A program made the translations under genes and the position numbers. Positions 5,191 to 50,200 of a stretch of DNA of 64,000 bases are shown piece by piece. A model generated the notes under the pieces. It worked only from the letters and a program-made list of their open reading frames with translations, was not told the DNA's origin and did not search any database. The stretch comes from Macrostomum lignano (Eukaryota), in contig NIVC01000736.1 of assembly GCA_002269645.1 (NCBI GenBank), forward strand, positions 62,001-126,000, in the 5' to 3' direction. Each line of letters begins with the position of its first letter. The first letter of the stretch is position 1.

Positions 5191-5324
5191 TTATCAGCAT
5201 GATTCATAACACAAGCAAACCAAATCCAAGCCGAAAGCAGGACATAAAGAATCAAAATTTCAACGATTCGCATTCTGAAGCAAATGAAGGTACATTTGAA
5301 TGTCAAGCTGTCACCGGCCCGCAG

Positions 5325-8300
5325 GTACTCCTACCAGTTCGGCTGGATGAACAACAAAAAGTTCATCAAGCAGCTGCAGAAGGACAACATTGACTTGGCC
5401 ATCCTGCAGAGCGAAATCGGCTCCGTGAATACGAAGCGGAGAAAAAAGTCGTGAGTGATTTCTTACCGCTGCTGTTGCTTGAGCTGAAATCCATTGTATT
5501 AGCTAATCCATGATTGGCTAGATTAGCAATCCATTGTATTAGCTAATCGATGATTGGCTAGATTAGCAATCCATTGTATTAGCTAATCCATGATTGGCTA
5601 GATTAGCAATCCATTGTATTAGCTAATCCATGATTGGCTAGATTAGCGATCTATTGTATTAGCTAATCCATGGTTGGCTAGATTAGCAATCCATTGTATT
5701 AGCTAATCCATGATTGGCTAGATTAGCAATCCATTGTATTAGCTAATCCATGATTGGCTAGATTAGCAATCCATTGTATTAGCAAATCCATGATTGGCTA
5801 GATTAGCAATCCATTGTATTAGCAAATCCATGATTGGCTAGATTAGCAATCCATTGTATTAGCAAATCCATGATTGGCTAGATTAGCAATCCATTGTATT
5901 AGCAAATCCATGATTGGCTAGATTAGCAATCCATTGTATTAGCTAATCGATGATTGGCTAGATTAGCAATCCAATGTATTAGCTAATCCATGATTGGCTA
6001 GATTAGCAATCCATTGTATTAGCAATCCATGATTGGCTAGATTAGCAATCCATTGTATTAGCAAATCCATGATTGGCTAGATTAGCAATCCATTGTATTA
6101 GCAAATCCATGATTGGCTAGATTAGCAATCCATTGTATTAGCTAATCCATGATTGGCTAGATTAGCAATCCATTGTATTAGCAAATCCATGATTGGCTAG
6201 ATTAGCAATCCATTGTATTAGCAAATCCATGATTGGCTAGATTAGCAATCCATTGTATTAGCTAATCCATGATTGGCTAGATTAGCAATCCATTGTATTA
6301 GCAAATCCATGATTGGCTAGATTAGCAATCCATTGTATTAGCAAATCCATGGTTGGCTAGATTAGCAATCCAATGTATTAGCTAATCCATGATTGGCTAG
6401 ATTAGCAATCCATTGTATTAGCTAATCCATGATTGGCTAGATTAGCAATCCATTGTATTAGCAAATCCATGGTTGGCTAGATTAGCAATCCAATTGCGAA
6501 CAGGCAGCAGCTGCAGGCCCAATATCCCTCATCGATTTGAGGCGGCGTCCCGGCGGGCCAGTTGACAGACAGCCGGTTTGCAGTTTAAAAATAATGGCAC
6601 AGAAACTGAAAGCCTTCAAGACAAGGGGAGATCCGTCTCGGATCCCCGGGGACAGAGAATGATCGACTGGAGCAGATTATGAGTCGCAGGGGCCGGCCTT
6701 TCAGATCCCGGCAGCGGGATAGAGGCGCTGGTAATTAGCTTAGTCTGCAGCGGCAATCGACAGCTAATCTTCTTAAAGCTCAAACTTGTCCCAAAACAAA
6801 CTTTCCCCCTCCATGTGCAGCCCAGTAATCCCCGGAATCGATATCCCTTGGCGTGTTGCAGAGGGCAGCCGGTTTTGGTTACAGAAAAATATTGTATTTT
6901 AGATTTCTAACATATTGCACTACTGACAGTAGGAAAAAGCTAAATTTTCTATGCGTGTTTTGCAAATGGATAGAGTTTGAAGGATGAAATTGTTTATTCA
7001 TTTTTCCTTTGACTCTTTAATGCTTCTGTTGCGTATTCTGCAGCACGCGTAAAATTGGGTTTGTTAATCATGAATGAATTGGATAAAATGGATTGCTAGT
7101 CTAGCCAAAGCACTGAATTAATATAGAAACAGAATGGATTGCTAATCTAGCCAATCATGAATGAAGGAATAGAATTGAATTGCTAATCTAGCTAATCAGT
7201 TATGAATTGGATAAAATGGATTGCTAATCTAGCCAACGTCAAGGATGAATAAAAGAAGTGGATTGCTAAAATGGTGTACTTTTAAAACACATTATTCGGC
7301 TACTGAGCGGATCGGCCGTCTACCAATTGATCGAATTTCGAGCTCGTATGGCAAGGCAGCTAAAAATATCCCATAGCAACCGGAAGGCGGCAGTTCCGCC
7401 CAGCTTTTTAATTCGCGATCGAAGCCTCCCCTGCCGGAGTTTCCCCTGCCAAACCTTTTGTTTTAATCCTGGATTTTCCGTCCGCTCGCCTTTGTGCTCA
7501 AAAGAGGAATCGGCTGCTTTTTTATCGGCCTTTGTGCCCGGGACAATGCGTGTGCGATAATAATAATCATAATCCAATACAATAAACTCACTTTCACTCT
7601 CCCTATCTGAGCAGTGACCTCACAGCTGCTTGTGCTTTTTATTGCCTTTCCTTCATCACTTCTTCTGAATATAAAGGGCGGTGACTGTGAGCAGCTCACT
7701 TGCCGAGCTCGCTTTCGCAAAGGGATCAATCAATGATTGGGGAGCGGGGAAAACCCGCCTCTTTGTCCTCCCTGCCCCCTCCTCCGCAGTAGCAGAATGA
7801 ACAAAAATGCCCCCCCCCACCGCGTCTGTTGCGCGCAAACTGGAAAATTCCATGCCAAAAACAGCCGCCGCCGCCCCAGACTCCGCCTCCGGAGCTCCCT
7901 GCTCGAGTCCTCGTTTCCGTGACAACGCCGCCTCGTCTTCGCTACCTTCGCTGCTAGCTGGGAATTCCCAGGAATCCAGGGGCACACAGAGAGGCCGCCT
8001 CTCCAGCTCCCCCCCTCCCGGAGCCTTTGATGCCTTGATGGAGACGCGAGCTGTCACAGAGCGGCCGCACTTAGTCTGAGTTCGAGACTCTCCCGAGAGC
8101 CGGGGGAACCCAGCGGTAATTAGTCTGGGAAGCTGGCCTGACCTTAGTTCTGCTCCCTCAGGCCTTTCTCTCAGTTCGGCACAATCTCGAGCTAAAAGAG
8201 GACAAATCTGTGTCTGAGTTAAAAAATTGACCACTGAATGTCGCAATTGAGGGATTTAAATACCAAATCCTTTCGATCGAAAGCACCAAATAAAGCGACT

Positions 8301-11300
8301 TGGATTCAAAAGCTATCGAAGCGGTTTAACAAACAACCTATTTTAATCAACAAGCAGCTCATGGTCCCTTCCCTGCTCAAGCCTCCGTCTGGAACTCCTC
8401 AGCTGAGCATCCAATCTCACTGGGCCAATGGGAGCAGGCATTCCGGACAACTCGCTCCCTGCCTTCCCTGATGCTCTCCGCGGGTTGGCACCGGCTGAGG
8501 CTGAAAGGGGGGGGGGGTTGGGAATTGCTTGACCCGGATCAAAAGAGTCCGACTACTGAGCAGTGCGGCCTTCCTAAGACTCGGCCTTATCTGAGCTGAC
8601 AAACTTGGACCCCGAAGGATTTAGAAGCATCGAAAAGCAGGAGAAGCAGACAGAAGCAGACAGAAGCAGACAGAAGCAGACAGAAGCAGACAGAAGCAGA
8701 CAGAAGCAGACAGAAGCAGACAGAAGCAGACAGAAGCAGACAGAAGCAGACAGAAGCAGACAGAAGCAGACAGAAGCAGACAGAAGCAGACAGAAGCAGA
8801 CAGAAGCAGACAGAAGCAGACAGAAGCAGACAGAAGCAGACAGAAGCAGACAGAAGCAGACAGAAGCAGACAGAAGCAGACAGAAGCAGACAGAAGCAGA
8901 CAGAAGCAGACAGAAGCAGACAGAAGCAGACAGAAGCAGACAGAAGCAGACAGAAGCAGACAGAAGCAGACAGAAGCAGACAGAAGCAGACAGAAGCAGA
9001 CAGAAGCAGACAGAAGCAGACAGAAGCAGACAGAAGCAGACAGAAGCAGACAGAAGCAGACAGAAGCAGACAGAAGCAGACAGAAGCAGACAGAAGCAGA
9101 CAGAAGCAGACAGAAGCAGACAGAAGCAGACAGAAGCAGACAGAAGCAGACAGAAGCAGACAGAAGCAGACAGAAGCAGACAGAAGCAGACAGAAGCAGA
9201 CAGAAGCAGACAGAAGCAGACAGAAGCAGACAGAAGCAGACAGAAGCAGACAGAAGCAGACAGAAGCAGTCAAGCTGCCTCGGTTTGGGCGCAGCCGCTA
9301 TCGCCACCGGTCATCCGGTGACGAATCCGATGAATGCGACGACGGAGGAGCCCTTGGCGGCGGGCCACCAGCCAGGCCGCCGCTGCTGTTTGCCGCCGCC
9401 TCCTCCTCGTCAGCTTCATCGTCGCTGCTCAGCCTCCTGTCGCCGACGTTGCCGTCCACGCCTCGGTCGGCGGCGGCAGCTGCAACGGCGGCGGCAAATG
9501 GCGACGCCAGCGGAAGCCTCAGGCGCTCCTCCCGCCACCGGCATTTCAGATGGAAGGAGCGGCTGCTGTACGCAATCCGGTCCAACGTAGTGCAGATCAT
9601 CCTGTGCGCCTTCGTGCTCATCGACGCCGTCATTGTGATCGCCGAGATCATCCTGGAGATCAAGGCCATCACCAGTAAGTAGCCAGGACTATAGGTGCCG
9701 TCTGTGGGGTGTCAGGATATGCTGAGTGCCTGACTGTGGGCTGTCAGGATTTGCTCAGTGCCTGACTGTGGGCTGTCAGGATATGCTGAGTGCCTGGCTG
9801 TGGGCTGTCAGGATTTGCTCAGTGCCTGACTGTGGGCTGTCAGGATATGCTGAGTGCCTGGCTGTGGGCTGTCAGGATTTGCTCAGTGCCTGACTGTGGG
9901 CTGTCAGGATATGCTGAGTGCCTGGCTGTGGGCTGTCAGGATTTGCTCAGTGCCTGACTGTGGGCTGTCAGGATATGCTGAGTGCCTGCCTGTGGGCTGT
10001 CAGGATTTGCTCAGTGCCTGGCTGTGGGCTGTCAGGATTTGCTCAGTGCCTGGCTGTGGGCTGTCAGGATTTGCTCAGTGCCTGGCTGTGGGCTGTCAGG
10101 ATTTGCTCAGTGCCTGGCTGTGGGCTGTCAGGATTTGCTCAGTGCCTGACTGTGGGCTGTCAGGATTTGCTCAGTGCCTGGCTGTGGGCTGTCAGGATTT
10201 GCTCAGTGCCTGGCTGTGGGCTGTCAGGATTTGCTCAGTGCCTGGCTGTGGGCTGTCAGGATTTGCTCAGTGCCTGGCTGTGGGCTGTCAGGATTTGCTC
10301 AGTGCCTGGCTGTGGGCTGTCAGGATTTGCTCAGTGCCTGGCTGTGGGCTGTCAGGATTTGCTCAGTGCCTGGCTGTGGGCTGTCAGGATTTGCTCAGTG
10401 CCTGGCTGTGGGCTGTCAGGATTTGCTCAGTGCCTGGCTGTGGGCTGTCAGGATTTGCTCAGTGCCTGGCTGTGGGCTGTCAGGATATGCTGGGTGGGGT
10501 TTATTCTCCGATTGAAGCCTCCATATTTATTCATCCATCGTTCCTGGAGTCCGATGCATCCATCCGGGATGCACACCGCATCCAGGTTTAATCTGCATGG
10601 GTTTGTGGAAATCTTTGGAATTTGAGATTTACCTGAAAGGGGCTTAGGAAGATGATGGAAGAGGCTGCAAGGACGGAATATTCGAAAATGGCCGAATAGC
10701 GGAGAATTTTGTTGATGATGGAAACTGCTTACGCAGTTTAGGGATTTTCTAAAGGGTTCTCGGAATCTCAGGAATTTAAGCTCAATGCTGTTGATTTTAG
10801 TTATCCCAAAGGATTAGTCAGGGATGAAGACATGTAGAAAACAGATGAGAGTTAGCAGAGCTGAAGCTCGAGTCCATGTGGCTGTGTAACCAATGGATTG
10901 TGGCACCGAGCACTGCATCCCGATACGAGCTATCAGTTGATGCAAAAAACCCTATGGTAGGAGACTCCAATCGGAAATGGAGCTGCTATCCTAGGGATCC
11001 ACCCAAAGCGAGTCGGTCACTTTGTCTCGATGCTATTTCGCTGGGTCGGTTTCACAACTCCAAACTTCTCAAGCTCAAAATTGCCTGAATCCGAAACACC
11101 GGCGCCTCACAAATTTGCGAATTGCAGGCGAGAAGCAGGAGCTCGAGGACGCCTTCGTGCAGACTGCCGGATTCGTCAATCGAACATTCGCCAAGCAGCT
11201 CGGCGAGCGAGGCCTCCTGCTGCCGGCCTTCAGTCCGGAGCTGACGTCGTCGCCTCAGTTTGCCGAGCGCCTGGTGACCAACATGGCCGACGTGCTCCTG

Positions 11301-14300
11301 ACGCTGAGTCAGAACTCCAGCATCTCATGCAACGTGACCTCCTCGGTGGCTGGCGGGCAGCCCGGAGCGAGCTCGCCCAGTCCGTCGGTAGCCGGGTCCC
11401 ACCAGCCGCGGTTGCGTCGACACGTCGCCAGCGACGCCGGCGCCGCCGCCTGGGGTGACACCAACCGGTCGTATTCGTCGGCGACTTCGGCGTTCGCCAA
11501 CTTCCAGCAGGAGTTCAGCCACGCCAAGGTACTGCACGACGTCTCAGCCGTGCTGCACTTCGTCAGCATTGGGATTCTCGGCCTGTTCGTCCTCGAGGTG
11601 GCGCTGAAAATTGTCTGCCTCGGTCGGAACTTTGTGCGAGAGAAGTTCGAGGTGAGTAGATAATTGTACAATGGAATCTGAATCAGACTTGTGTCTTGCA
11701 AAATTGATAGCTCAAATTCTCAGTACTCGCTTTGACATTGAGTTCGTCGAAGAAGGGCATCTAAAAGATTAGTTGAACTTGGACTTCGAGTTTGAAGCTG
11801 CAGGTAAAATCAAAGGCTCCGCAGGCGCACTGCTTAGTGTGTAATTAATTTCCAAACTGCAAGGTTGACTCCTGCTGCCCTTATTAACAAGATGTCAGAA
11901 AGAGAAACTGAGACAACTATCCAGGTGCCACTGAACCGAAGAAGCATAAAAAATAGATTAAAAAAACGCCTTGAAAATATGCTGTCGAAAAATATTATTG
12001 TCCATTTCGTACCTGAAAGCCGTCAGCAGCACGCGTTCCAACTCGCATGGACTGTCTATTTTGGTCCAGAAGGGCTTCGAAGCCGTTGCAGTGAATTAAT
12101 AAGCGGCCTGACAAACCGAACATATTCCCATCCAGCCAACCCCTTGCCTACGCGGATTCAGGCCGCAAAAACAGGCCTCCAATTTCACTACGAGGAAACT
12201 CGAGCCGACTTCAAAGCCAGCAATATTGACTAATATTAGAGGCGGAGGAAATGTTTTCAAAGGTATTTGCATCATGATTTTCGAATTAGGAAATCTGCTT
12301 TCGACGGCAAGTTTGATAACCGGAGGCCGCTCGTCACCCGGGGTGTATTTGTGCCCTCGCGAATGCGCACCGATAACCGGTCCATCTGCGAATGGAGCAC
12401 GTCTGAGTCATTATCGACGATAAAAACAGCTCAAGTGACTCTTTTTAGATCAAAGGGTAGCTTTTGGAAACTGGGTGTCAGCCAGAAAGCAGTAGACGAA
12501 ACGCCGAGTGCCCGTCTGACTTCGCCCAAGAGGTCAATATCAGGGTCCAGAACAGGAGATCGTGTTCAGATTCACTCGGTGCTTCACAGAATTTCAATAC
12601 GTCCTGCTCTTGCGACGTCCACTAGATTGATGCTGCAAGTTCGTGTATTATTATCTTCTACCTACAAAAATTTGGAACAAAAATATTAACAGTACGCTCG
12701 TACACTTAGACAAGGGTTCACAAATTAACAGTGGGACCGAATGAACACTCGAGAGTTAAGCCACCGATCGAGCCCAACCATGGCAATTCCGATAACGCAA
12801 AAGTTGGAAACCATTCGATGCTTAATTTCGTCGAGGCTCATTCTTCAATAAAATGAATGCTTCAGTGCACAAACAGTTAAGTGCGAATTTCCAGGATCTG
12901 AAAAGATCTTCCACACAGATACTTCGAATCAGCCAGCTCAATGAAGCTGCAAAGAGCGCCCTTCGATTCGCACGGAAACTGAAGCTACATTAATGCGAGC
13001 CTTGCTGTTGCACAGCGCGCTGTACAAAGCACTGCACAAATGCGCTCTTTCCTGGTCGGTAATCCGCCGGGACCGAGACAGCCAGATCTGGGATGAGTCA
13101 ATCAATTATTGCGCAGTAGGATGAGGCGCGGAGAAGACGCTGGCAGTGCAGGAACAGGGACGCCCTGTCTGGAATTTGACTCGGGCCCAGCGGCCAGGGG
13201 ACTGGCATGCTGATGAAATATTCACCAGGCAGGACATTCTTGTTCCGCATTTCTCGGCTCGGCTGCGAACTTTAGGCGCACAACCGAGGCGGCTGCGTCT
13301 TTTGCGCACTTTGCCGTTAGATACATTTTAAGAGTTTATCTTTTCCTGATGGTTTCGAGCCCACAAGGAAACGAGATTTTGCGAATTGGGAAGGGAGTCT
13401 TGTAATTCAGTCCATTGAGAGGGCGTCATTTTATAAGGAGAAATTCGAAATGTCTAGTTTTTTTCACACAAGAGATGAAATTCGTTAAACAACAACTAAA
13501 AGCTCAATGCGTTGTTGTTCAAGTCCTTATTGAGAGCAGCGGCACCGGGTTTATCTCTGGGCCTGGACACAAACGTAAGCCGTGCAACCGACCGAATCCG
13601 GGGCGCCGGCATCAGCCAGCAGGCAGTCGACGAAACGCCGAGTGCGCTTCGGTAGGGTGCCTGCAGCGTTAGCAGCAGCACTTCCTGCACCGTCTGTGGA
13701 CACTGCGACTGTGGACACTGCTGATGAGGTGACCTTTCAATTGGAATCGCCGACAGCGCAACAGGTCCCTTGGACGGACCAGCCTGGCATGACGATAGAG
13801 TGCTATCGCTGGGCGTCCTCAACGGCTGAGGACAGGAGGGGCGATATTGGCGTCAATCCGCGTTCTCCCTGGAGCATCCCAGAGGACGTCTTGAAGAAGT
13901 CTGATAGGCCGTCCGATGTCGAAACAGCAGCTTTCGAGTATCGCCATGATGGTAGAGACAGACCAGCCGCTCCGACACATTGACGCTCGGAGCTCCATTG
14001 ACCTGGCGATTGTGTGAAATGCCTTCTTGAAATACTTGAATCGACTGGCGTATCTTGCAGAACTCTTCTGAACTTTCTTTGAAACAAAACACAATAAAAA
14101 TTAAGGAGGTACATTAGGGAGACCCCCAGAAACTTGCGAATATCTAAAGCAATGCATGCAGTTCTGGTTACTAGAAAACTAGATGAACTTCTCTGCAGTA
14201 CAGAGAAAACTTGTTATCAACTTCTCCTGTGTTTGCAAAGTGTGCCTAAGATCTCAAACAGGTAATTTTGCGGATCAACGCGCGGGCTTATAATTAATCG

Positions 14301-17300
14301 AATTGTTATTAAAATTTCGATTTCAGATCGTCGACGCAGTGGTGATCATGATCTCATTTGTGGCGGACATCGTCTTCGTGAAGCTGGAGTCCACGGAAGT
14401 GTCAGTCATGGTCCTGTTCCTGCTCTGGCGAATTGTTCGCGTCATCAATGGTGCGTGACGGGTTCTGTGCAGGATGCTCGCTGCTGGGAGAGGAAAAGCC
14501 AGACATCTGGGTTCTCCCGACACTTGCAGAGCACGGACAATAGCAGGAGTTCGTATTCAGCACTTCTGAGCCCCCCCCCAGCTGCCAATATGGCTATAGA
14601 TGCTAGGCCCCCATCAGTCTCACATTTCTTCTCCTGCCCCAGCAGAGGATCTCCATATTCGCATTATCAGTAAGGCCATTAATAATAGTGCTTACATAAA
14701 AGTTCAGCGACTTTCTAATCCCACAAGTCGAAATCACTCGCAGATGCAGAAGTGCGCAGATATTAACAAGCTTTAGTAAAAGTTATTAAAATGAATTTAA
14801 ATGTAAACTAGCGGGTTTGTAACTGAGTACCTCATCAGAAATTAATCTTCTGAATTAGATTTCCCTATGCACTGCAATTTCGGCATTCCAGGCCAACGCC
14901 CTCAATTATTTACAAAAGGGTCTCTGTCTACGTGTACACTCGCACTACCTCTGTACACTTGATTAAATTGACCAGTATGAGAAGGGCTGAAGTTGGTTAT
15001 TCGACCTGTTTATTGTCTGCCTATACAGTTAAACTGATAAATCTGCATGCATAGAGGGTTACCGCAGTATTCATCTCTATCCGTGGAATCAGTTGACTTT
15101 ATTTTTTTCACGGCAGAAGAGATTGGAAATTATTAGCGAGTGATTAAAAACAAGCCAGTAATGAGTCTTGGCTGAGGCTGCCCTTTTTTTACGAGTTACT
15201 CGACTGCACGGGTCGGCACAGATCGAAGGATCGGGGACTTTTCATCGGGGAATGGACTAGTCGATGGAGAAGTAGAAGGCCCCCATCCCGTACCTTTCCG
15301 ATGCGGCGGGGGGGGGAACTGCTCGGCAACGGATAGAGAAGAAACGCAACGAGACCCACCCGTGGGCAAATGCGAGCAGTCATCTGTGCCAGCCAGTTAT
15401 CGACATTTTCTGGCCTTTGCCTCTGCCTCTCAGTTGAAGCCGCATCGGGCATGTCCTCAGCTCGCCTGTACCTCGTTTGCACGCTTGAATTCAGAAAATT
15501 TCACCGGTGGGCTGGGGAGCTGCGGCCCGACTACAAATTGCATCTCAGCCCAATTTGCCCCAGCCAATCTCTGGCACTTCCTTTCTCCAGTGTCTCTCGA
15601 GGCTCGCATTCCATTCACGTTTCTTTTAGTCAGGGCCTGAGCGACTTTGGTGCACTATTCACTGAGCAGCATTTGAGATTGACAAGGCGAGTTAGAGCTA
15701 AACCATGATCTTACACCTTTAGTGGCCACACGGTGTTAACTGGGTCCTGCGTATCACACTGTGTCACAATAAAGTACACCCGCTGATATAGCATCAAATT
15801 GAATAAGTAATTCCCTGTCAGCTTTGTCTTGTATTGCCAGTCTCCTATAAATTCTGTGTTTAAAATTTCGAATACAAGAGAGCGAATTTACAATCTGTTT
15901 ATACCAGAACGAAACCTGTTTTTGTCGGCAGCAGGGCTGGCCATAGACTTCGGGCCCCCAAGCCCCGGCAGCAGGGCTGGCCATAGACTTCGGGCCCCCA
16001 AACCCCGGCAGCAGGGCTGGCCATAGACTTCGGGCCCCCAAGCCCCGGCAGCCCCGGCAGCAAGCCCCGGCCCGAAGTCTATGGGTTGGCCATAGACTTC
16101 GGGCCTTCAAATCCCGGCAGCAGGGCTGGCCATAGACTTCGGGCCTTCAAACCCCGGCAGCAGGGCTGGCTATAGACTTTGCGCCTTCAAACCCCGGCAG
16201 CAGGGCTGGCCATAGACTTCGGGCCCCCAAACCCCGGCAGCAGGGCTGGCCATAGACTTCGGGCCCCCAAACCCCGGCAGCAGGGCTGGCTATAGACTTC
16301 GGGCCCCAAACCCCGGCAGCAGGGCTGGCCATAGAATTCGGTCTCCCAAAACCCGGCAGCAGGGCTGGCCATAGACTTCGGGCCCCCAAGCCCCGGCAGC
16401 AGGGCTGGCCATAGACTTCGGGCCCCAAGCCCCGGCAGCAGGGCTGGCCATAGACTTCGGGCCCTCAAGCCCCCGTGTTAAAACAAAGCCGCAACACCGT
16501 CCGCAGGCCTGATGATGCACGAGAAGCAGCGTGGCGAGTTCAGAATCCAGCTGCAGAAGCGAGCCAGGCGAATGTCCGAGATGAAGTGTGACACCCTGGA
16601 GACGGAGCGCGACCTGCAGGAGGTGCCATAAAAGCAGGGGGAGTTTCAAAGTCAAATACTACTTAGGGCTGCCAGCTGCCTATTGACAGAAAGCACGAGC
16701 CGCACAGGGCAGGGAGCTCAGATTGGACTGAGGGGGGGGCAGAATGGCTGTCGCAACATGAGGCAGGAATTCTGTACCAGAAATGCGTCTGCAAACAGCG
16801 CGCCCCGAATTCCCCGGGCAAACAGGCTGGGGTAATTAACTACTCAGTCTCCCTATGCCGCCCCTAGTAGCAAAAGTTGAGAAGCGGAATGATCTCGCGG
16901 CCTGGCAGCAGTAGGGGATTAGCCGGGGCGGGACAGGCGGCCGGGGATCAATTAGGGCCCGAGAGTCGAGGCGGCGCGCATGATGGATAACTCGAGCAGA
17001 GAAGCAGCTGCCAGCAAGAGCGCCAACCACAATCTCGCTGTTCACTTTCAGAAGCACATCCTGTTCCTGGAGGAGCTCTGCAGAGAACTGGGCGGCGGGG
17101 AGGAGCAGATTGCCAACTGCAAGCCGCGGTGTGAGTTGCCTCACCTGAGCTGTGAATTCTATTTTTTAACGTCAATCTCCAGCGTGTCAGAAGTGAGGAA
17201 ACTGAGATGATGGGGAGACTGAGATGGGGAGCGAATGCGTGTTAGGGATATGTGGAAATGGAGATCCACAGCCAGAGTGAAAAGAAGAAGAGGGGCTGCA

Positions 17301-19703
17301 AGGGTGACAAAGAGAGAGAGAGAAGTGAAGAGGGACAGCCCCCCTCTCAGCGCTCTTCGTAGCACCAGTTGATGGAGTTCCCAGTGAAAAGTGCAGCCGC
17401 CTCGCCCCACGGCCAGACTGCGGGCTTTCCTTCCGGCGGCGGCCGTCCGTCCGTCCTTTCTGGTCGTCAAGAAGATGATAAATGGCTTTCAAGTGGCAGC
17501 CGGTAGCAGCTCCTGGAGCAGGCAGGCGGATAGAATTCTGAAGTGGGGGCGCGCGCGCGAGCCAAAAGTCCGCGAGCAGTCGTCGCCAGCTTCCTGCGCC
17601 GCGAAGGCCGCCTGTCTGTCAAGGAGGCCTCAGTGGCCGCCTGAGCGCTTTTTGTCCCGTCTATTGGCGGGAATCCAGTGGGGGTTTGGGGAGCATCGGA
17701 ATCCCCAAGCGCCCCGGGGGCTCGAGTCCTGAGCTGAGAGGTCGCTCTTTCTTCGTCTCTTCCGCTGCACTTCGCAGCGCACTGCAGACCCTCAGCCAGA
17801 TAGTTGGGGGGGGGGGCTTCAGCGTGAGCAGACGCGAGAAGTTCATTAGATGGGCCACGTGTTGCGGCCTGCAGAACGCAGGCGGGAATTATTGAGTCAG
17901 ACATTCCATTTTCTAGTCTAAGCTAACTTAATATCTAAATACAAGGATGAGCGAAGAGAACTTTTTTTACGGAAAGTAGCAAAGATTTCAAGTGATTCGG
18001 TAATGGAGATCATCTTCTGTGTCTCTACGTCTGGGATCTAGCGGAATGGGCGACCCACGCTTAACCACTGTGTCTACGGACCACCCTGCAGCCAAGTGTC
18101 TGGGAATCTACGAGTAATAACAATTCTTCTAGGAATTCTAAAGCACTGGTTTCTGAGAAAACTACATTAGTTGTTTCTAAGAGAACTACGGGATTAGTTT
18201 CTAGGAAAACTACATCATTGTTTCCAAGGGTTCGTCGCAACTAAAGCATCGGTTTCTACGACATACTATATAAGAAAATGATTTCCAAGAATCTCATCAT
18301 TGAATATTAGGCATTGGTTTCCGAGAAATAGTTCAACTAGAAACCCTCTGCCGTCCCTCCCGCCCACACAGTCGTAAACATCAGCAAGCGCCAGTCCAAC
18401 AACGCCCTGAAGTCCATGGCCGCCATGTCCGCCGGCATCTTTGGCGGCATCGCCGGGGCGCAGCACCGCCGCTCGCTCAGCGCCCTCACCAACAACCTCG
18501 GCACCCCGCCGAGCACCTCCCGACAGTCCTCTGGCTGGACACCATCGTGGAGGACGCTGCTAACACCGCAGCCTCCACCGCTGCCTCGACAGCGGTGCCT
18601 GTCGACAAGGGCGGCAACTCGACGCCATCGTCGCCTGATGCCGAGCGACCAACGATGAACGGCCGGCCGTCGGGGCAGCGGCAGGGCAAGCGAACTCAAT
18701 TCTGCAGCGCCAGCTCTATGTCGAGGAGGAGTCGCCGCAGGAGGTCGTCGCCGATGCCGATTCGCCCGACGTCGGTAAGGCTGAAGAAGCCCTTGTCGTT
18801 GACGTTGTAGAAAACAACGCCGACGCCGTCGATGCTCCGGACGCTGGTCGTTGCGGCATCGCCGGCGAGATGGCGCCCGCAGTGGCGGAGATCCGCCTAC
18901 AAGACGTCCGGGTGGACAGCGGGCAGTACACCACCACCGGGTCCGACAGCGATGATGAAGAAGATCCCTGGGAGCTGCAGGTGAGCCTGGAGTCTGCGAG
19001 ATCGCACCGCTAGGGACAAATCAAAAAGAGAAATACCTTCCTCAAAATGTACTTCATTTAATACGCAACGCTTCAGTGGCATACCATGGATCCCCGGATA
19101 ATTCTAGAATTTTCCGCCTACTAAGTAAGACGTTTGCCGTCAAAACGTCCGCACCTCCCATGAAGTCTGGAAGGACATGACAGTTGAATGGCTCAGCTTC
19201 AATGACCAGTTGTGCAGAAAAGTGCAAAAAGATAGGTCGATAAAAGTCGCGGTCTCGTAGTTAGAAAAAATTATTTTTCGATGACTAAAAATGAATCAGA
19301 ATACGGACCTTGGGGCGGCGCGATGCTCTGATGTGCCAGCGGCCCAGGCTCGTTCCAAGTGCAGTCGCATTAATTTGGGGCTTAATTGGAATCTCGGTTT
19401 GGCTCTGCTCGTGCAATAAAAGCCCCTGACGGCCAACTCGCAAGACACAGGGAAGTGTACATGCTTAAGGATTAGTAAAGTTGGGGCCGCTGTACACTCC
19501 TGTGTTGAGTGTGTGCCTGTGCGTATGACTGCGTACGTATCCGCGCGCTTGTGTGCCTGCTCAGGGAGTGGCGGAATGGGCAGCAATGCCTCTCGCCGGT
19601 GGTGTGACAATGTTGCTTGAAGTGCGCCAGGGTGTACAGCCCCCTGCCTCTAACTGAGCATCTCTCTGGCCATTCCTAGGAGTACAACTACAAGTTTTGC
19701 TGA
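5325..19703 (+). CDS. HVCN1: Voltage-gated proton channel (Hv family, Hv3-like), spliced. Exons: 5325-5450, 6511-6560, 9270-9674 (possibly from 8625), 11128-11651, 14327-14450, 16507-16622, 17052-17130, 18372-18980, 19680-19703
   Basis: GT-AG exons with matching phases give S1 VQIILCAFVLIDAVIVIAEIILEIK, S2 LHFVSIGILGLFVLEVALK, S3 FEIVDAVVIMISFVADIV, S4 LFLLWRIVRVING and a C-terminal coiled coil, matching human Hv1 helices (D112, H140, F150, E153, D174, D185, W207, R208, R211, N214 equivalents). The 5' end is uncertain (Met in WMNNKKF is a candidate start). Exon 18372-18980 has 1-2 frameshifts. Confidence 0.85.
5490..6493. repeat. Intronic minisatellite, ~40-41-bp unit (CCATTGTATTAGCTAATCCATGATTGGCTAGATTAGCAAT), ~24 copies
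   Basis: Tandem repeat filling the first visible Hv intron. Confidence 0.95.
7060..7270 (-). repeat. Inverted, degenerate copies of the 5490-6493 unit
   Basis: GGATTGCTAATCTAGCCAATCATG near 7137 is the exact reverse complement of part of the unit; several further partial copies. Confidence 0.8.
8641..9269. repeat. (CAGAAGCAGA)n, ~63 near-perfect 10-bp units abutting an Hv exon
   Basis: Read directly; contains no T and no stop codon in any + frame. Confidence 0.97.
9270..9674 (+). CDS. HVCN1: Hv channel exon: N-terminal region and S1 with selectivity-filter Asp
   Basis: Open frame KLPRFGRSRY...VLIDAVIVIAEIILEIKAIT; donor a|gtaagt at 9675. Confidence 0.9.
9695..10492. repeat. Intronic minisatellite, 32-bp unit (GTGCCTGGCTGTGGGCTGTCAGGATTTGCTCA), ~24 copies
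   Basis: Tandem repeat; explains ORFs 9854, 9918 and 10174. Confidence 0.95.
11128..11651 (+). CDS. HVCN1: Hv channel exon: long extracellular S1-S2 loop plus S2
   Basis: Acceptor ttgcag|, donor gag|gtgagt; phase 1 matches the previous exon; ends in the Hv S2 motif ...LEVALKIVCLGRNFVREKFE. Confidence 0.9.
13560..14075 (-). mobile_element. Degenerate, internally deleted RTE-type LINE fragment in an Hv intron
   Basis: YFKKAFHTIAR, YSKAAVSTSDGLSDFFKTSSGMLQG and VQEVLLLTLQAPY match the copy at 23.4-26.6 kb. Confidence 0.8.
14327..14450 (+). CDS. HVCN1: Hv channel exon: S3-S4 voltage sensor (absent from the ORF track)
   Basis: tttcag|IVDAVVIMISFVADIVFVKLESTEVSVMVLFLLWRIVRVIN g|gtgcgt; 124 nt, phase 0 to 1. 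Confidence 0.92.
15925..16472. repeat. Intronic minisatellite, 39-40-bp unit (CAGCAGGGCTGGCCATAGACTTCGGGCCCCCAAACCCCGG)
   Basis: About 13 tandem copies ending just before the 16507 acceptor. Confidence 0.92.
16507..17130 (+). CDS. HVCN1: Hv channel coiled-coil exons (16507-16622, 17052-17130)
   Basis: GLMMHEKQRGEFRIQLQKRARRMSEMKCDTLETERDLQE|KHILFLEELCRELGG; phases consistent, heptad-like pattern. Confidence 0.8.
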
Positions 19704-23359: not shown

Positions 23360-26300
23360 TAAGTAACTAGCTAGCTAGCAGGGCGCGTCAGATGGCGCGC
23401 CGCAGAGCCTGGGAACGAACAAAGTCCGCTCCGTTGGCAGTGTCGGGCGCCCCAGCGTCGCACAACAGGCAGTCCACGAATCGAGGGTTCGGGCCTGACC
23501 CCGCCTGAAGGGACCCTGCAAGGTGAGCAGCAGGACGTCCTGAACAGGTTGGGGGCAGTAGCCCTCGGCCCGGATCACGTGGTTTGCCAGTTGAAGTCGC
23601 CGCCGGCGCATGATGGTGGACGGGCGCTGCAGTTTGGCCCGATCGTACAGGGCCTCGGTCCCGACGCTCTCGTCAGCTCGAAAGGCCGCACGGAGCAGCC
23701 CTGAGTGCGCCGAGTCCAGCTGCCGCTCTAGCGTATCCGTCAGCGTCCACGTCTCGGCGTTGTAGAGCAGGACGGTTTCAACCACCGCCTGCCACAGCCG
23801 AGCCCTCTGGCGGTCGGGCAGCACTTCGGATTGGAGGACGGCTCGGATCGAACGAAAGGCCGCCCAGGCAAGTCCTCTGCGCCGCCGGAGGTCCTCTTCC
23901 ACGTGAGGCACCAGACCGCCGAGGTAGGTGAACCGCTGGCAGCGTGCGAGCCTGGTCGTCTGCCCGTCTGCGACGCGGCACGTCAGGTCCGCTGGGATGT
24001 CGGCCGGCACAGTCAGCACCTCGGTCTTCAGCGTGTTGACAACCAGTCCGACGCTCGATGCCACCTCGACCAGCCTGTCGATCTAGCGCTGGGCGCCTTC
24101 AACGGACGAGGACAGGAGGGCGAGGTCGTCGGCGTAGCCAAGCACGCTTAGGCGCTTTCCGCCGTGGCGGCGACCGATGCGTCTGCGCAGCAGGAAGCGG
24201 TCATTAGCCGAGGGGAGTGCGGTCCGAAGCACCCAGTCCAGCAGCAGCACGAAGAGGAACGGCACAAGCGTGTCGCCATGCAGAACTCCTGATGAAGTGT
24301 CGAACAGGTCAGACAGGCCGTCCGCCGTCACCACAGCAGCTCGAGTATCGCAATACAGCGACATGATAGCGTCGATTAACTGCTGCGGGACCAGGTAGGC
24401 TTCTTCTTCTCCCATTCGGGCGCGCTCGGGCCAGGGCCCATGGCACCGGGCTTCAGACGGCGCCCGCCTTCGGAGGAAGTTCAGCACCGCGACGTAGTTC
24501 TCGAAAACTGCCGCGGGCTCCGGGCTTGCCCCCCAGAGGCGGCAGCGGTGTGGAGTCAGGGCGGGGCAGGAGATCAGCAGATGGGCCGCCGTCTCCTCTC
24601 CATCACCGCAGAAGCGGCAGGTGGGGGCCACGTCAACGCCGATGGCGGCCTGGAAGCCCCGCAGGGCCGGGCAGCGGTCGGCGCCGGCTGGCAAATCAGG
24701 CAAGGTGCCAGGCCAGCGAGCTCGTTCTCGCCGCCTCGGTGGCCGCCGCGTTGTAGGTCTGGTGCCAGCGGGCGAGGCAGTGGCGGCGGACGGCAGCCTG
24801 CGTGGCAGCCAACGGAACGGGCGCGGCGCCTTGTGCCAGCGTGGAGCCTCGTTTGGCGATCTCGTCCAAGGCCTCGTTGCCGAGGATTCCCGCGTGGCCA
24901 GGCACCCACTGCAGGTGGACCGTGGTTCCCCGGGCCGCGAGGTCGGCGAGGCTGGCCCAGACGGCGTCGATCATGGTGGCGCCCGTCGACCCGGAGCCGG
25001 ACGCGAGCGTGGTAAGCGCGCTCAGGGAGTCAAAGCAGATGCGGACCGGCGACAGCTCTTCAGGGTCCGGGGCCGCGAGCACCCACCGAAGGTCTCAGCG
25101 ATGGCCACTAACTCGGCGAGGAAACTGGACGTCACATGGCCAGCAGCGACGCACGGCGTGGTGTTGGGCTCGACCAGGATACCGCTGCCGCCGTCCAGGA
25201 TGCCGTCATTCGCCGCTCCGTCGTTCCAGACCACGGTGCGGGCGGGCGGCAGGGCGGCGAGCGTCTGCTCCGCCGCGGCTCTCCGGGCCGGCAGGTCCCC
25301 CGCGAGGTCGGGGAGGCCAGCTGCAGCCCGAAGGTGACGGAGTCCAGGTCAGCCCAGGGAGGGTGTCGTCGGGACAGCGTAGACGGGCTCTTGCGGGGAG
25401 CCGCCCAGGCCCGCAGCGCTGCAAACGCTGGCCGCCAGCCGCGGGCGCTTTGGAGGCGGCAGCGCGGGCCGACGCTGGCCGCGCAGGCGCGAAGCGGGTT
25501 GTCGGGCGGCAGCCTGAGGGTGCGCTCGTGGAGGAGGTCAGCGTGCATCTCCGCGCGGACTGCCATCGGCGGCAGCCCAGCCTCGCGCTCCAGCACCTCC
25601 GACCTGATGTTCCGCGGACACCCGGTGATGATGCGGTGATGAAGGGACCAGGTAGGCTCGAAGGACGAAAGGGAGCGCGGCTCTCAGCACCGAGTCAAAA
25701 GCCTTTCGAAAGTAAGCGAAGACAATGATCAGCATAGACTGGCGGATGCGCGCCTCCTCGATGACACGGCGGAGTGCAAGGATCTGTGTCACTGTACCGC
25801 GTTGCGGCCGGAATCCATTCTGCTCGTACCGCAGGTACGGGTCTAGCACCGACTGCAGACGATCGAGCAGCAGCCGGTTGAAGAGCTTCGCGGTGCAGGA
25901 CATCAGCGAGATCCCGCGGTGGTCTTCTTTCCAGTGGGAGCGGCGTGTCCAGTGGGAGCGCAAAACTGGCAGGTAGCGGCGACGCGGGCGCGTTCACGAT
26001 GCCGGCGAAGAAGTCGTGCAGTTCATTCCTGCGCTCCTCCGGGGTGTCGCCGGCAGTTTCAGCGCCACGCGCATTTTGCGCCCCGTCAGAGTCCTGACGG
26101 CCGTCCACACTGGGCGGCTCTTCACGTCGGGGCCGGCTGCAGTGATGGACCTGACGGCGTCGTCGACAGCGGCCTGCTGCCGCTCGTCTAGAAGCAAGGA
26201 CTATCCTAGTGATCCTTGTCTAGAAGGCGCTCAAACGCGTCTTCAGCGTCGCCTGTGGGCCGCCAGTTTCTGTGGAGTCGCTCGATGTTGAGCCGCGCCT

Positions 26301-46617: not shown

Positions 46618-47282
46618 TATATGCACAATATCTAACCAATCTAGATAGGTAATAAAGTGACTAAATGCTACAAAACCAATTAACCAAGTACCAAAAGTTA
46701 TATCATATTATTTGTCACCTTACTAAAATATTTTAGTCAATAATTCTATTGTTTGTTACATTAAATTTTCATTGAATTCAATTAAATTGAAGGGTTAAAG
46801 TTTTAAATATCAATATTTAGTTTTATAATACTATTGAGTATTATATTAGCAAATTAAGTAAAAGTAAATTAAAAAACTTGCTTCTGGCAAAACTTAGTCT
46901 GATCACAAATTAGAAGAATTTTTTTCAACAAAATAGGAAAATAGATCTGAATATACTTTATTTATCAAAGCAAAGCAAAATATTATATTCATATATACTG
47001 TTTATTGAATTAGTGCTGCTAAATATTTTATAATTAATCATAATTCATCATTTTAGCTGATAATATAATAAATTTGTGTTGTTCATGTGAATATATTAAT
47101 TATATTCACATGAGGTTGTTTTGTTTAAGTAGTGTTGTGTTGGCCTTGTTGAAAATGTTATTGTACAAAAGCAAAGTAAAGTGGAAACAACATGCAGCTT
47201 ACTTGACTCCAATTTCTTCTCCAATGGTCAGTTGATAAACCATAAAGTCCGCTTTCCAGCTCGCCGCTGTCCCAGTCACGCC

Positions 47283-50200
47283 ATGAGTCTGCAGCGCAAG
47301 AAGGACACCGCGCCCAGTCAGCGGTTCTTCGAGCACCCGGAGGTGATCGCCGAGTTCGATACGGTCCGCACCTGGCTCACCCGCAATCACAAGAAACTCA
47401 TGCAGACGGAGCCGCCAACCAACAAGAGCCTGGCCTCCATCTGCTACCAGCTGCTCTGCTTCCAGGAGGAGCAGGTCCGCCGCCAGGCAAAGTCGCCGCC
47501 GTATCCGACCCGCCTGCCCGGCCGGCTGTTCCTGGACTTCCAGCCGGGCGGCGCGCTCTGCCAGATGTTCCTGACTGTGTTCCGCTTCAAAGGCGAGCAG
47601 GGCTGGCGCAGGCTGGACTTTCACAAGGCCTCCTGGCTGGAGAAGAATCTGGAAATGCTGGCGCTGATGCGCAAGGAGCTGCTGGACTCCAAGCTGTGGT
47701 CGCTGCCGCGGGTGCACATCAAATCAGACGTGCCCGAGGACATCCGGACTCGCCTGCTGGACATTTGCCAGCGACACGGCCTCGAGCTGGCTGACACCGA
47801 GGACGCCTGCACACACCTGGTGTACGGCCCGGCCAGCGCTGCCCCGGCCGCCGCCGCCCAGCAGCTGCTTGAGGACAAGGTCACCCCGGCCTTCAAGGAG
47901 GGCAAGCACTCGGTGGTGCATTGGAAGGGCACCGTGTCCAGCTATGATGTGTTTTACACTAGCCCCGCTGAGCTGGAGGTTGAGGTAATCAGCATGGGAT
48001 AAATCCCAGCTCAGGCGGATTCTGGGTAAAGAGATTCGCCCATCTCATATGAGATTTCTTTCATCTCATATGAGATTTCCTCTCTATCTGCGATTCGTTC
48101 TTTATGCAAGGACTTGAGATTCCTTCTCCATTTCTGAATGAGATTTCCTCTCCGTTCCGACTATGAGATTCCCTCTCTACCCAGAATAAGAGATTCCCTC
48201 TCCATTCCAAATATGAGATTCCCTCTCCACCCAGAATAAGAGATTCCCTCTCCACCCAGAATATGAGATTCCCTCTCCACCCAGAATATGAGATTCCCTC
48301 TCCACCCAGAATATGAGATTCCCTCTCCATTCCGAATATGAGATTCCCTCTCCATTCCGAATATGAGATTCCCTCTCCACCCAGAATATGAGATTCCCTC
48401 TCCACCCAGAATATGATATTCCCTCTCCACCCAGAATACGAGATTCCCTCTCCATCCCGCATATGAGATTCCCTCTCCATTCTGAACAATATGAGATTTT
48501 CTCTCCATCCAGTGTATGAGATTCTCTCTACCTGAGACACTGAGATTCCCTCTGCCTGAGACACTGAGATTCCCTCTGCCTGAGACACTAGAGTTCCTCT
48601 GCCTGAGACACTAGATTCCCTCTGCCTCAGACACTAAGATCCCTCTGCCTGAGACACTGAGATTCCCTCTGCCTGAGACACTAGATTCCCTCTGCCTGAG
48701 AAACTAGATTCCCTCTGCCTGAGACACTAGATTCCCTCTGTCTGAGACACTAGATTCCCTCTGCCTAAGACACTAGATTCCCTCTGCCTAAGACACTAGA
48801 TTCCCTCTGCCTAAGACACTAGATTCCCTCTGCCTGAGACACTAGATTCCCTCTGCCTGAGACACTAGATCCCTCTGCCTGAGACACTAGATTCCCTCTG
48901 CCTGAGACACTAGATTCCCTCTGCCTGAGACACTAGATTCCCTCTGCCTGAGACACTAGATTCCCTCTGCCTGAGACACTAGATTCCCTCTGCCTGAGAC
49001 ACTAGATCCCTCTGCCTGAGACACTAGATTCACTCTGCCTAAGACACTAGATTTCCTCCGCCTGAGACACTAGATTCCCTCTGCCTAAGACACTAGATTC
49101 CCTCTGCCTGAGACACTAGATTCCCTCTGCCTGAGACACTAGATTCCCTAATCAATCCCACTCCTTCGCCAGGTGACCCGCTGCGTCCCGGACGGTCCCT
49201 GGGAGCTGGACGCCGCTTACCTGTTGACGCTGGACGAGCAGTGCGAGTTCCCGCCGGAGGAGGACTTCCTGGTGGAGTACCAGGAGTTCGCCCGGCGCAC
49301 CGGCCGCAAGCCAGCGGCGCCGCCCCGCTACTACTCGGTTTCCGAGTTCGTGGAGCTCAAGCGGGAGAAGAAAATTCAGAAGCGAAAGCGATCGCCTTCG
49401 CCGCCAGCCTCGTCGACCGGCGCCCAGGCGGTGGCCGCATCGACGCCTTCGTCGAATTCCCGTTCCGGCGTTGGCGGAACCGCCGGTTCCGGCCGGAAGT
49501 CGTCGGCTGCCAACGTCTCGGCGGCGGCGGCAGCTTCCGGCGGCGGCGCTGGCGGCAAGAAGGCGCGCCGGGAGACGGGCGCCTCCGCTGCTGCTTCTGC
49601 GACAGGCAGCCAGCCCTCCGGCGAGCCCATGGACGCGGAAGCGCCCGGCGGCGGGTCCGGCCGCGCTGGCGGCGGCGCCGAGGAGGACGCGGACGCCACA
49701 GCCGCTACGGTCGGCGGCACGGAGGGCGGCGGTGGCGGCAAAGTCGAAGACGGAGAGGATGAGCACGGGCAGGTGAGGTCACACTACTGGTAGTAGTGCA
49801 GACAGCCTGTGAGATTAATTTCCGATCTGTTGCTTACCTGGCAGAGGCAACATGAAGCATTTATTGGGCCTCTTTCACAAGCTCGAAATTTCAAATTTCT
49901 GAGGACACTCGGTCTGCAACAAACAACTGCCGACACAATCTCAGAAATAAACCCCGGTCGTAAGCTAAACCCCAGCCCTAACCTAAACCCCAGCCCCAAC
50001 CTAAACCCCAGCCCTAACCTAAACCCCAGCCCTAACCTAAACTTCACCCTAACCTAAACCCCAGCCCTAACCTAAACCCTAGCCATTTTAGCATTTCTAC
50101 TACTGTTTAGACAGTAAATAGTGTGTTTTGCTAATGTATAGAGGAATTTTGCTGTGGATAATCAACTGCAAAAAGCAATGTATCACAATTGTATTGCATT

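Follow-up and report, generated by a model that had tools for sequence, protein, structure and literature searches.

To which branch of the Hv family, the voltage-gated proton channels, does a protein belong whose S4 helix lacks the first gating arginine, and what would this lack do to its gating? The question is raised by a gene in a 64,000-nucleotide stretch of the Macrostomum lignano genome (GenBank assembly GCA_002269645.1, contig NIVC01000736.1, positions 62,001 to 126,000 of the forward strand), referred to here as the window, whose own numbering is used throughout. An exon at 14327-14450 on the forward strand encodes S3 and S4 of an Hv-type voltage sensor, and the S4 signature RxWRxxR is absent from it: the motif reads LLWRIVR, with the tryptophan and the second and third arginines (R2 and R3) kept and the first (R1) replaced by leucine. 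An earlier note, made from the sequence alone, took the gene for an Hv3-like, possibly constitutively leaky proton channel that would extend a molluscan subfamily beyond molluscs. The explanation preferred here is that the gene encodes a Leu-type Hv protein whose gating is likely to be altered by the loss of R1, and this explanation as a whole is assigned a probability of about 0.6.

The exon is complete, bordered by AG and GT (tttcAG before it and GTgcgt after it), and is the fourth in the gene model described below. Its translation is IVDAVVIMISFVADIVFVKLESTEVSVMVLFLLWRIVRVIN(G). Aligned to human Hv1 (PDB 5OQK), it supplies D275, S282 and D286 of S3 and the S4 segment L304-L305-W306-R307-I-V-R310-V-I-N313. 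Leu304 (CTG, 14420-14422, forward strand) occupies the position of human R205, which is R1; W306 (TGG, 14426-14428) is the equivalent of W207, R307 (CGA, 14429-14431) of R208, R310 (CGC, 14438-14440) of R211 and N313 (AAT, 14447-14449) of N214. In S3, D275 (GAC, 14333-14335) and D286 (GAC, 14366-14368) correspond to D174 and D185, and the S1 aspartate D81 (GAC, 9623-9625, in exon 2) corresponds to D112. The register comes from a profile of the family against 5OQK (E = 2e-30), which lays '..llWRivRvin' over 'LRLWRVARIIN'. Codon and register thus agree in placing leucine at the R205 position, as had been claimed beforehand, and the equivalents of the S1 aspartate, W207, R208, R211, N214 and D185 said to be kept are all found in the gene model, together with that of D174. 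The suspicion that the host might be a flatworm is also borne out, the host being M. lignano and a UniProt fragment of that species (P0001) being identical to the window translation. A paralogue in M. lignano (P0002) has the same S4, LFLLWRIVRVING, and among the other R1-less sequences of the alignment that lack the proline discussed below, the R1 position is aliphatic in 18 of 18 (16 Leu, one Ile, one Val). Because the leucine is conserved in both the paralogue and the family, Leu304 is read from these sequences as a natural residue and not as a sequencing error.

That the gene encodes an Hv-family protein, i.e., a voltage-sensing domain with no pore domain, appears from its sequence to be very probable. 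Searched against solved structures, the profile of the family (alignment A1, with the window protein as first row) matches human Hv1 as stated above and mouse Hv1 (3WKV) with E = 7e-26, and the next matches are the voltage sensors of Cav and Nav channels (1e-10; Cav3 3e-10) and Ci-VSP (2e-6). In Pfam, only the S2-S4 part of Ion_trans is matched (profile positions 32-109 of 241), leaving the pore region unmatched, and no pore (S5-S6) exons were found in the gene model or by tblastn. AlphaFold2, run on an alignment with full-length rows, predicts four helices and a long helix continuing S4 with a mean predicted local distance difference test score (pLDDT) of 88; residues 126-180 of the trimmed construct, from S4 through the exon 5 segment, are predicted as one continuous helix with a pLDDT of 85-98 per 10-residue block. 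The gasket and counter-charge residues F251, E254, K258, E272, D275, D286 and N313 are all present, and the invariant columns of the family alignment are D31 (in S1), H70, K87, E101, D104, S111, D115, W135, R136, R139 and N142. The window protein thus shares with canonical Hv1 (human HVCN1; 5OQK, 3WKV) the four-helix voltage sensor without a pore, the helix continuing from S4 and the equivalents of D112, E119, H140, F150, E153, K157, E171, D174, S181, D185, W207, R208, R211 and N214. It differs from canonical Hv1 in the replacement of R205 by leucine, in having no histidine at the H193 position, which leaves the H140 equivalent as the only one of the two Zn2+-binding histidines, in a distance of 160 residues between the S1 aspartate and the S2 histidine (D81 to H241 in the gene model) where canonical Hv1 has 28, and in at least 120 additional C-terminal residues with family-specific motifs.

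An exhaustive HMMER search returned 913 homologues at E <= 1e-3, and in 132 aligned representatives the R1 position is arginine in 83, followed by proline in the xPWR pattern of the Hv3 type in 29, and Leu, Ile or Val followed by a residue other than proline in 20, two of which are the window gene and its paralogue. All of the best matches that cover S4 (P0002-P0012, P0014-P0016) have leucine at R1, as does P0013. By its sequence, the gene belongs firmly to a spiralian non-proline Leu-type group with the pattern L-x-W-R-x-x-R. The fuller signature of this group, L(I/V)-x-W-R-x-x-R with EFR(I/L)xLQKRARR after S4, is present in the window protein as LLWRIVRVINGLMMHEKQRGEFRIQLQKRARR. Flatworm members occur in cestodes (two paralogues in Rodentolepis, Hymenolepis, two paralogues in Spirometra/Sparganum, and Hydatigera; Mesocestoides P0164 is a candidate by its match to the family profile), in trematodes (Clonorchis, Schistosoma mekongi, Fasciola, Calicophoron and Heterobilharzia) and in the monogenean Cichlidogyrus. 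Further members come from the annelid Owenia (P0016), the brachiopod Lingula (P0018), the nemertean Tubulanus (P0020), the bryozoan Bugula (P0026) and the bivalve mollusc Dreissena polymorpha (P0149, with VLWR).

Beyond S4, the group shares a large glycosylatable S1-S2 loop, an N-terminal motif (F.KQL.KDNID...L..EI) and a C-terminal module (L..LC..LG..E..I..CKP), after which comes a segment that is hydrophobic and Gly-rich. A hidden Markov model (HMM) of the C-terminal module, trained on flatworm sequences only, finds it at E < 1e-3 in six of eight other Leu-type proteins, in five of 25 proline-type proteins and in none of 20 canonical ones. Lingula has the N-terminal motif ahead of S1 (E 3.5e-5), and weaker matches to it occur in Tubulanus, P0112 and P0014; it was not found in proline-type or canonical proteins. 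The median distance from the S1 aspartate to the S2 histidine is 158 residues in Leu-type, 140 in proline-type and 30 in canonical proteins, so that loop length separates R1-less from canonical proteins. The nearest relatives outside flatworms are the large-loop non-proline Hv proteins of Annelida, Bryozoa, Nemertea and Brachiopoda (Eisenia fetida GIUK01058977, Dendrobeatia GJXY01243660, Lingula XM_013530614, which is P0018, Owenia P0016, Bugula P0026 and Tubulanus P0020). These share with the window protein the leucine at R1 (isoleucine in Tubulanus), the x-W-R-x-x-R pattern, the S1 aspartate, the large S1-S2 loop, EFRIxLQKRARR, the C-terminal ...C(K/R)P... module with its hydrophobic segment and an N-terminal D(N/S)(I/V)D..(I/L)..E(I/L) motif. 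When two S4 columns are left out, the HMM built from non-flatworm Leu-type sequences gives the window protein 120.6 bits, and the proline-type and canonical HMMs give it 98 each; the former is its best HMM score and goes with the smallest distance among all groups (1.12). The differences are that these relatives belong to other phyla, that the flatworm sequences form their own clade and that flatworms have a more elaborate N-terminal motif (RYxYxxGW...).

The two terminal motifs are observations in their own right. In the window, the N-terminal one (RYxYxxGWxxxxxFxKQLxKDNIDxxxLxxEI) lies at 5299-5450 in exon 1, and the C-terminal one (LxxLCxxLGxxExxIxxCKP, then NALKS(I/M)AA(L/M)xxGxxGGxxGA) at 17052-17130 and 18372-18460 in exons 6 and 7; no description of either was found. 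The hydrophobic C-terminal segment, NALKSMAAMSAGIFGGIAGA, could be membrane-associated, perhaps as a membrane-inserted hairpin.

How, then, does the Leu-type group relate to molluscan Hv3? Aplysia Hv3 (AcHv3), represented here by XP_005094274 (P0099), which has the 980 residues reported for AcHv3 and the S4 sequence LPWRVIRVVN, likewise has leucine in place of arginine at R1 and keeps the tryptophan, R2, R3, the asparagine and the S1 aspartate. In AcHv3, as in molluscan Hv3 proteins, the S1-S2 loop is likewise very large, and the C-terminus is large, a feature that the window protein probably shares; the C-terminal module is partly shared, in the five of 25 proline-type proteins noted above. 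The two differ in that AcHv3 reads LPWR and the window protein LLWR, with about 31 % identity between them, and in that the N-terminal motif of the Leu-type proteins is absent from proline-type proteins. The proline before the S4 tryptophan (xPWRxxR) is missing from the window protein, which has Leu305, and from every flatworm sequence of the alignment. Neighbour-joining trees of 112-113 columns were used to place the group (three point trees, with and without two S4 columns masked, and with extra taxa), and their deep nodes are unsupported. The flatworm Leu-type clade receives 75-81 % bootstrap. A single clade unites all 49 R1-less sequences in two of the three point trees, with a support of 34-40 % that drops to 14 % once the two S4 columns have been masked. 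In the voltage-sensor core, the window protein scores 82 bits against the proline-type and 85 bits against the canonical HMM, with mean distances of 1.43 and 1.46, and as judged from these sequences the core lies about as far from the proline clade as from canonical Hv1. A sister relationship of the Leu-type proteins to molluscan Hv3 is plausible on the sequence comparisons.

The description of the gene as Hv3-like therefore stands in part: the absence of R1 and the large S1-S2 loop are as in Hv3, and the long C-terminus probably is too, whereas the proline is lacking, the core is no nearer to Hv3 than to Hv1 and the R1-less clade has a support of 14-40 %. The trees recover the flatworm clade, and the placement with Hv3 is not firmly recovered. 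The idea that the gene would be the one to extend Hv3 beyond molluscs has to be given up. A 2023 review (PMC10377628) already records proline-bearing Hv3-type channels in Brachiopoda and Phoronida and, from Annelida, Bryozoa and Nemertea, Hv with a large loop and no proline. Among the sequences in its supplement, those of Eisenia, Dendrobeatia and Lingula belong to the family of the window gene. Flatworm members of the non-proline Leu-type are not described there, and the window gene adds such a member to a known group, without being a new kind of channel. The same review treats the S4 proline as the hallmark of Hv3 and places it only in molluscs, brachiopods and phoronids. In nemerteans, however, Lineus longissimus (P0057) has the LPWR type and Tubulanus polymorphus (P0020) the ILWR type. 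Because nemerteans show both, their sequences suggest that the proline type is older than the review states and that the two types are separate old paralogues.

Flatworms also possess a second type of Hv. The two flatworm Hv sequences printed in the supplement of PMC10377628 are short proteins with a long S3-S4 loop in which R1 is kept, their database copies reading LFRLWRVIRIVN; the other flatworm entries of that review are accession numbers only, the type of which was not checked. Trematode RxWRxxR proteins (S. haematobium XM_012937230, which is P0181, S. mekongi P0187 and Fasciola P0195) share with the window protein the phylum, the superfamily and the S1 aspartate, and differ in keeping R1, in their length of 270-300 residues, in a short S1-S2 loop and in the long S3-S4 loop. 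In none of 200 bootstraps do they join the flatworm Leu-type clade, no other group is as distant (1.81), and both types occur together in Schistosoma mekongi, Heterobilharzia and Fasciola hepatica. Given the 0/200 bootstraps, an origin of the flatworm Leu-type by independent loss of R1 from a flatworm RxWRxxR Hv was rejected. Because the two never group together and coexist within species, the flatworm Leu-type is, on these sequences, an old paralogue and not a recent flatworm derivative. An RxWRxxR Hv of M. lignano itself was not among the 2-15 matches per query of word-index protein searches, which are too few to tell.

With regard to function, it would be reasonable to expect a proton conductance that leaks and depends only weakly on voltage, by analogy with the channels in which R1 is known to be missing. 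AcHv3, which lacks R1, has a proline before the tryptophan and carries a 299-residue S1-S2 loop, shows a proton-selective leak and a voltage dependence of about 60 mV per e-fold (PMC10911540); the account of Aplysia Hv3 on which the original proposal was built is accurate. In human Hv1, R205W produces a closed-state leak, faster activation and a weaker voltage dependence 'comparable to AcHV3' (PMC11853527). In the window protein, protons would cross the voltage sensor itself, and in the activated state D81 would pair with either R307 or R310. Nothing is missing from the hydrophobic gasket (V, F251, V, I), nor from the set of counter-charges (E88, E254, K258, E272, D275, D286). Two gating charges would be left instead of three, and the resting-state salt bridges of R1 (to D112/D185, here D81/D286) could not form. 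The expected result would be a shallower conductance-voltage relation, faster gating, a conducting state favoured at negative voltage and possibly a closed leak, because only two gating charges remain and the R1 salt bridges are lost. The long helix after S4 would probably serve dimerization. The odds that gating is indeed shallower and faster, shifted to the conducting state and possibly accompanied by a closed-state leak are put, by this analogy, at close to even or slightly below.

Several observations weigh against the explanation preferred here. Foldseek, run against the PDB, gave no match at E <= 0.001 (best E 0.19); its top matches were mostly voltage-sensor domains (SLC9C1, Nav1.7, TPC, CatSper), Hv1 was not among the matches listed, and the search was treated as uninformative. 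With extra taxa added, the masked tree does not show the clade of R1-less sequences. In the literature searched, there is no electrophysiology of any non-proline Leu-type member, and the proline next to the tryptophan of AcHv3 may itself cause the odd gating of that channel. Other neutral substitutions of R205 in human Hv1, as far as is known, leave the channel voltage-gated. Some relatives, furthermore, have lost residues other than R1: the tryptophan is lost in P0013 (Cichlidogyrus casuarinus), which reads LFLRVLR, R2 is glutamine in P0031 (from a Logan assembly), which reads LLWQIVR, and several cestode and trematode members carry T, C, Q or I where Hv1 has E153. Because the E153 equivalent, the tryptophan or R2 is lost in these relatives, their sequences leave room for the view that proton conduction may not be the conserved role of the family. 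At the 3' end of the gene, finally, the coding-looking sequence within 18372-19013 shifts frame past the conserved C-terminal motif, near 18540 and again near 18690, so that it runs through all three frames before reaching a strong CAG|GTGAGC donor near 18980. Indels in the assembly, short introns that went unrecognised or decay of this copy could each account for these frame changes.

The Leu-type proteins could constitute a distinct spiralian Hv subfamily, an old paralogue of molluscan Hv3 and not a proline-less version of it, whose gating could differ from that of both Hv1 and AcHv3. This possibility, which is rather unlikely, is suggested because the group has its own conserved cytoplasmic N-terminal motif, a conserved hydrophobic, Gly-rich C-terminal segment and a presence across flatworms beside a separate RxWRxxR Hv; if true, the proteins would possibly provide a standing proton conductance at the resting potential, tuned by the extra domains. 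It is unlikely, though conceivable, that the window gene encodes an ordinary, steeply voltage-gated proton channel, in which leucine at R1 is tolerated, R2 and R3 suffice and no constitutive leak exists, with the oddity of AcHv3 arising from its proline or its large domains. The retention of every other functional residue of Hv1 (except at the H193 position) speaks for such a channel, as do the presence of leucine, not proline, before the tryptophan, the voltage gating that persists in neutral R205 mutants of human Hv1 and the status of the proline as the Hv3 hallmark in the review discussed above. On the other hand, R205W, which introduces no proline, is enough for leak, faster activation and weaker voltage dependence (PMC11853527), and the loss of one of three charges must reduce the gating charge.

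A further alternative is that the protein is a non-conducting voltage sensor or scaffold like TMEM266, with the N- and C-terminal modules carrying the function. NCBI labels some Lingula isoforms of the Leu-type family 'transmembrane protein 266', the modules outside the voltage sensor are strongly conserved and, as noted, the E153 equivalent, the tryptophan or R2 is lost in some lineages. This alternative is nevertheless improbable, in that the window protein has aspartate at the D112 and D185 positions as well as the tryptophan, and equally large extra domains do not keep AcHv3 from conducting protons. TMEM266, which is restricted to vertebrates, retains its three arginines, and the non-polar V111 and M185 take the places of D112 and D185 of Hv1 (PMC6392501). 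TMEM266 (HVRP1) and the window protein both have an Hv1-related voltage sensor, and in TMEM266 a coiled coil follows S4 and the C-terminus is long and disordered; in contrast to the window protein, it reads RxxRxxR and has no tryptophan signature. Membership of TMEM266 itself was rejected, given the S1 and S3 aspartates, the absence of R1 and the flatworm host. Finally, the gene could be a decaying duplicate or an assembly artefact in which the leucine codon would mean nothing for function. In M. lignano the genome is rich in repeats and strongly duplicated, the tail of the gene passes through three frames after about 18540 and the public gene model is only a 129-residue fragment. Yet the seven exons have canonical AG/GT borders and in-frame joins and match homologues from other flatworm classes, leucine at R1 is common to the family, the paralogue P0002 keeps the voltage sensor nearly unchanged beside a diverged loop, and three HVCN1-like transcripts were counted in the M. 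lignano transcriptome in a 2012 survey (PMC3447372; the window gene may be among them), all of which makes decay or artefact highly improbable.

The gene itself was rebuilt from at least seven exons on the forward strand, from 5284 to beyond 18541, encoding a protein of at least 435 residues. The S1, S2 and S3-S4 exons were found by tblastn with human Hv1, and the N-terminal exon and two C-terminal exons by tblastn with flatworm homologues; all seven have AG/GT borders, and the junctions are in frame. Exon 1 (5284-5450) has the ATG start and the N-terminal family motif (MKVHLNVKLSPARRYSYQFGWMNNKKFIKQLQKDNIDLAILQSEIGSVNTKRRKK-S), ends at the donor TC|GTGAGT in phase 2 and overlaps a region, 5299-5496, matched in tblastn by nine flatworm homologues with E down to 9e-9. 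Exon 2 (9550-9674; acceptor tttcAG|, donor A|GTAAGT, phase 1) encodes the S1 helix with the selectivity-filter aspartate D81, and homologues join '...KKS|WK/RxxLL' at precisely the point of its acceptor. Exon 3 (11128-11651; donor GAG|GTGAGT) encodes the extracellular S1-S2 loop of about 140 residues, with the four N-glycosylation sequons NRT, NSS, NVT and NRS, the S2 helix (H241, F251, E254, K258) and the S2-S3 linker up to KFE; the best in-phase candidate for its acceptor is ttgcgaattgcAG| at 11126-11127, where the G+C content increases. Exon 4 is followed by exon 5 (16507-16622; donor GAG|GTGCCA), which encodes the helix after S4, (G)LMMHEKQRGEFRIQLQKRARRMSEMKCDTLETERDLQE, with the family signature EFRIxLQKRARR, and to which P0002 is identical bar one residue. 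The C-terminal module follows in exon 6 (17052-17130; acceptor tttcAG|, donor T|GTGAGT), which reads KHILFLEELCRELGGGEEQIANCKPR and is matched in tblastn by 11 family members with E down to 2e-6. Exon 7, from 18372 to at least 18541 (acceptor cacAG|), carries the conserved hydrophobic Gly-rich C-terminal motif, (F)VNISKRQSNNALKSMAAMSAGIFGGIAGAQHRRSLS..., and is matched in tblastn by seven flatworm homologues (E about 3e-5); its start is firm. At least 120 residues follow S4, with sequence continuing beyond, the 3' end of the model being a lower bound.

Two features of the locus mimic coding sequence or its end. Intron 1 (5451-9549) contains a perfect 10-bp repeat in 63 copies (8642-9269), an array that is open in all frames and resembles a long open reading frame upstream of the S1 exon. 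The open frame upstream of S1 (8600-9549), which takes in this repeat and a Ser/Ala-rich stretch just 5' of exon 2, was rejected as coding, as it has no in-frame ATG, homologues splice across it and exon 1 at 5284-5450 is joined to 9550. The stop at 16629 after '...DLQEVP' was likewise rejected as the C-terminus once homology revealed exons 6 and 7. Tandem repeats occupy other introns too, with a 32-bp unit in 25 copies at 9695-10491 in intron 2 (9675-11127) and a third intronic array, of a 40-bp unit in 14 copies, at 15926-16473.

The protein search returned two M. lignano UniProt entries, P0001 and P0002, both named 'Voltage-gated hydrogen channel 1'. The public model P0001 (A0A1I8I230) is a 129-residue fragment, corresponding to 11396-14458, that starts within exon 3 and, continuing beyond the donor of exon 4, ends at a stop (…VINGA*). 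Neither S1 nor anything after S4 is included in it, and it is identical to the gene model from residue 187 apart from the intron read-through; the present model has, by comparison, seven exons and at least 435 residues. Over the 121 residues that run from S2 up to and including the helix after S4, P0002 and the window protein differ at about nine, and the S1-S2 loop of P0002 has diverged to the point of being unalignable. A voltage sensor conserved beside a diverged loop indicates purifying selection on the sensor, as far as the two sequences can tell. A search for the contigs encoding P0001 and P0002 returned no match.

R1-less Hv proteins are of interest as they reveal the role of the first gating charge, and the only recorded case, AcHv3, is confounded by its proline. 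The flatworm gene and its relatives, in which R1 is lost without the proline, offer a natural test that would separate the two effects. M. lignano is a transgenic model that is tractable by RNA interference. The flatworms with members of this family include major parasites of humans and livestock; Schistosoma, Fasciola, Clonorchis, Hymenolepis and Spirometra all have it, and if its members were constitutively conducting in these parasites, this would bear on the handling of pH in tegument and gut and possibly on drug targeting.

Elsewhere in the window, a SMARCC/BAF155-like neighbour lies on the forward strand at 47181-48002 and 50741-52903, with SWIRM-assoc_2 (E 5e-47), Myb/SANT, SWIRM-assoc_1 (E 4e-26) and SWIRM-assoc_3 domains. 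On the reverse strand, a region of 68 % G+C at 23375-26108 carries reverse transcriptase fragments of a non-long-terminal-repeat retrotransposon (RVT_1 E 8e-11; a weak zf-RVT) over several open reading frames, and a piggyBac-type transposase (DDE_Tnp_1_7; E 1e-48 and 7e-16) extends over two open reading frames at 60303-62012, its frame being interrupted.

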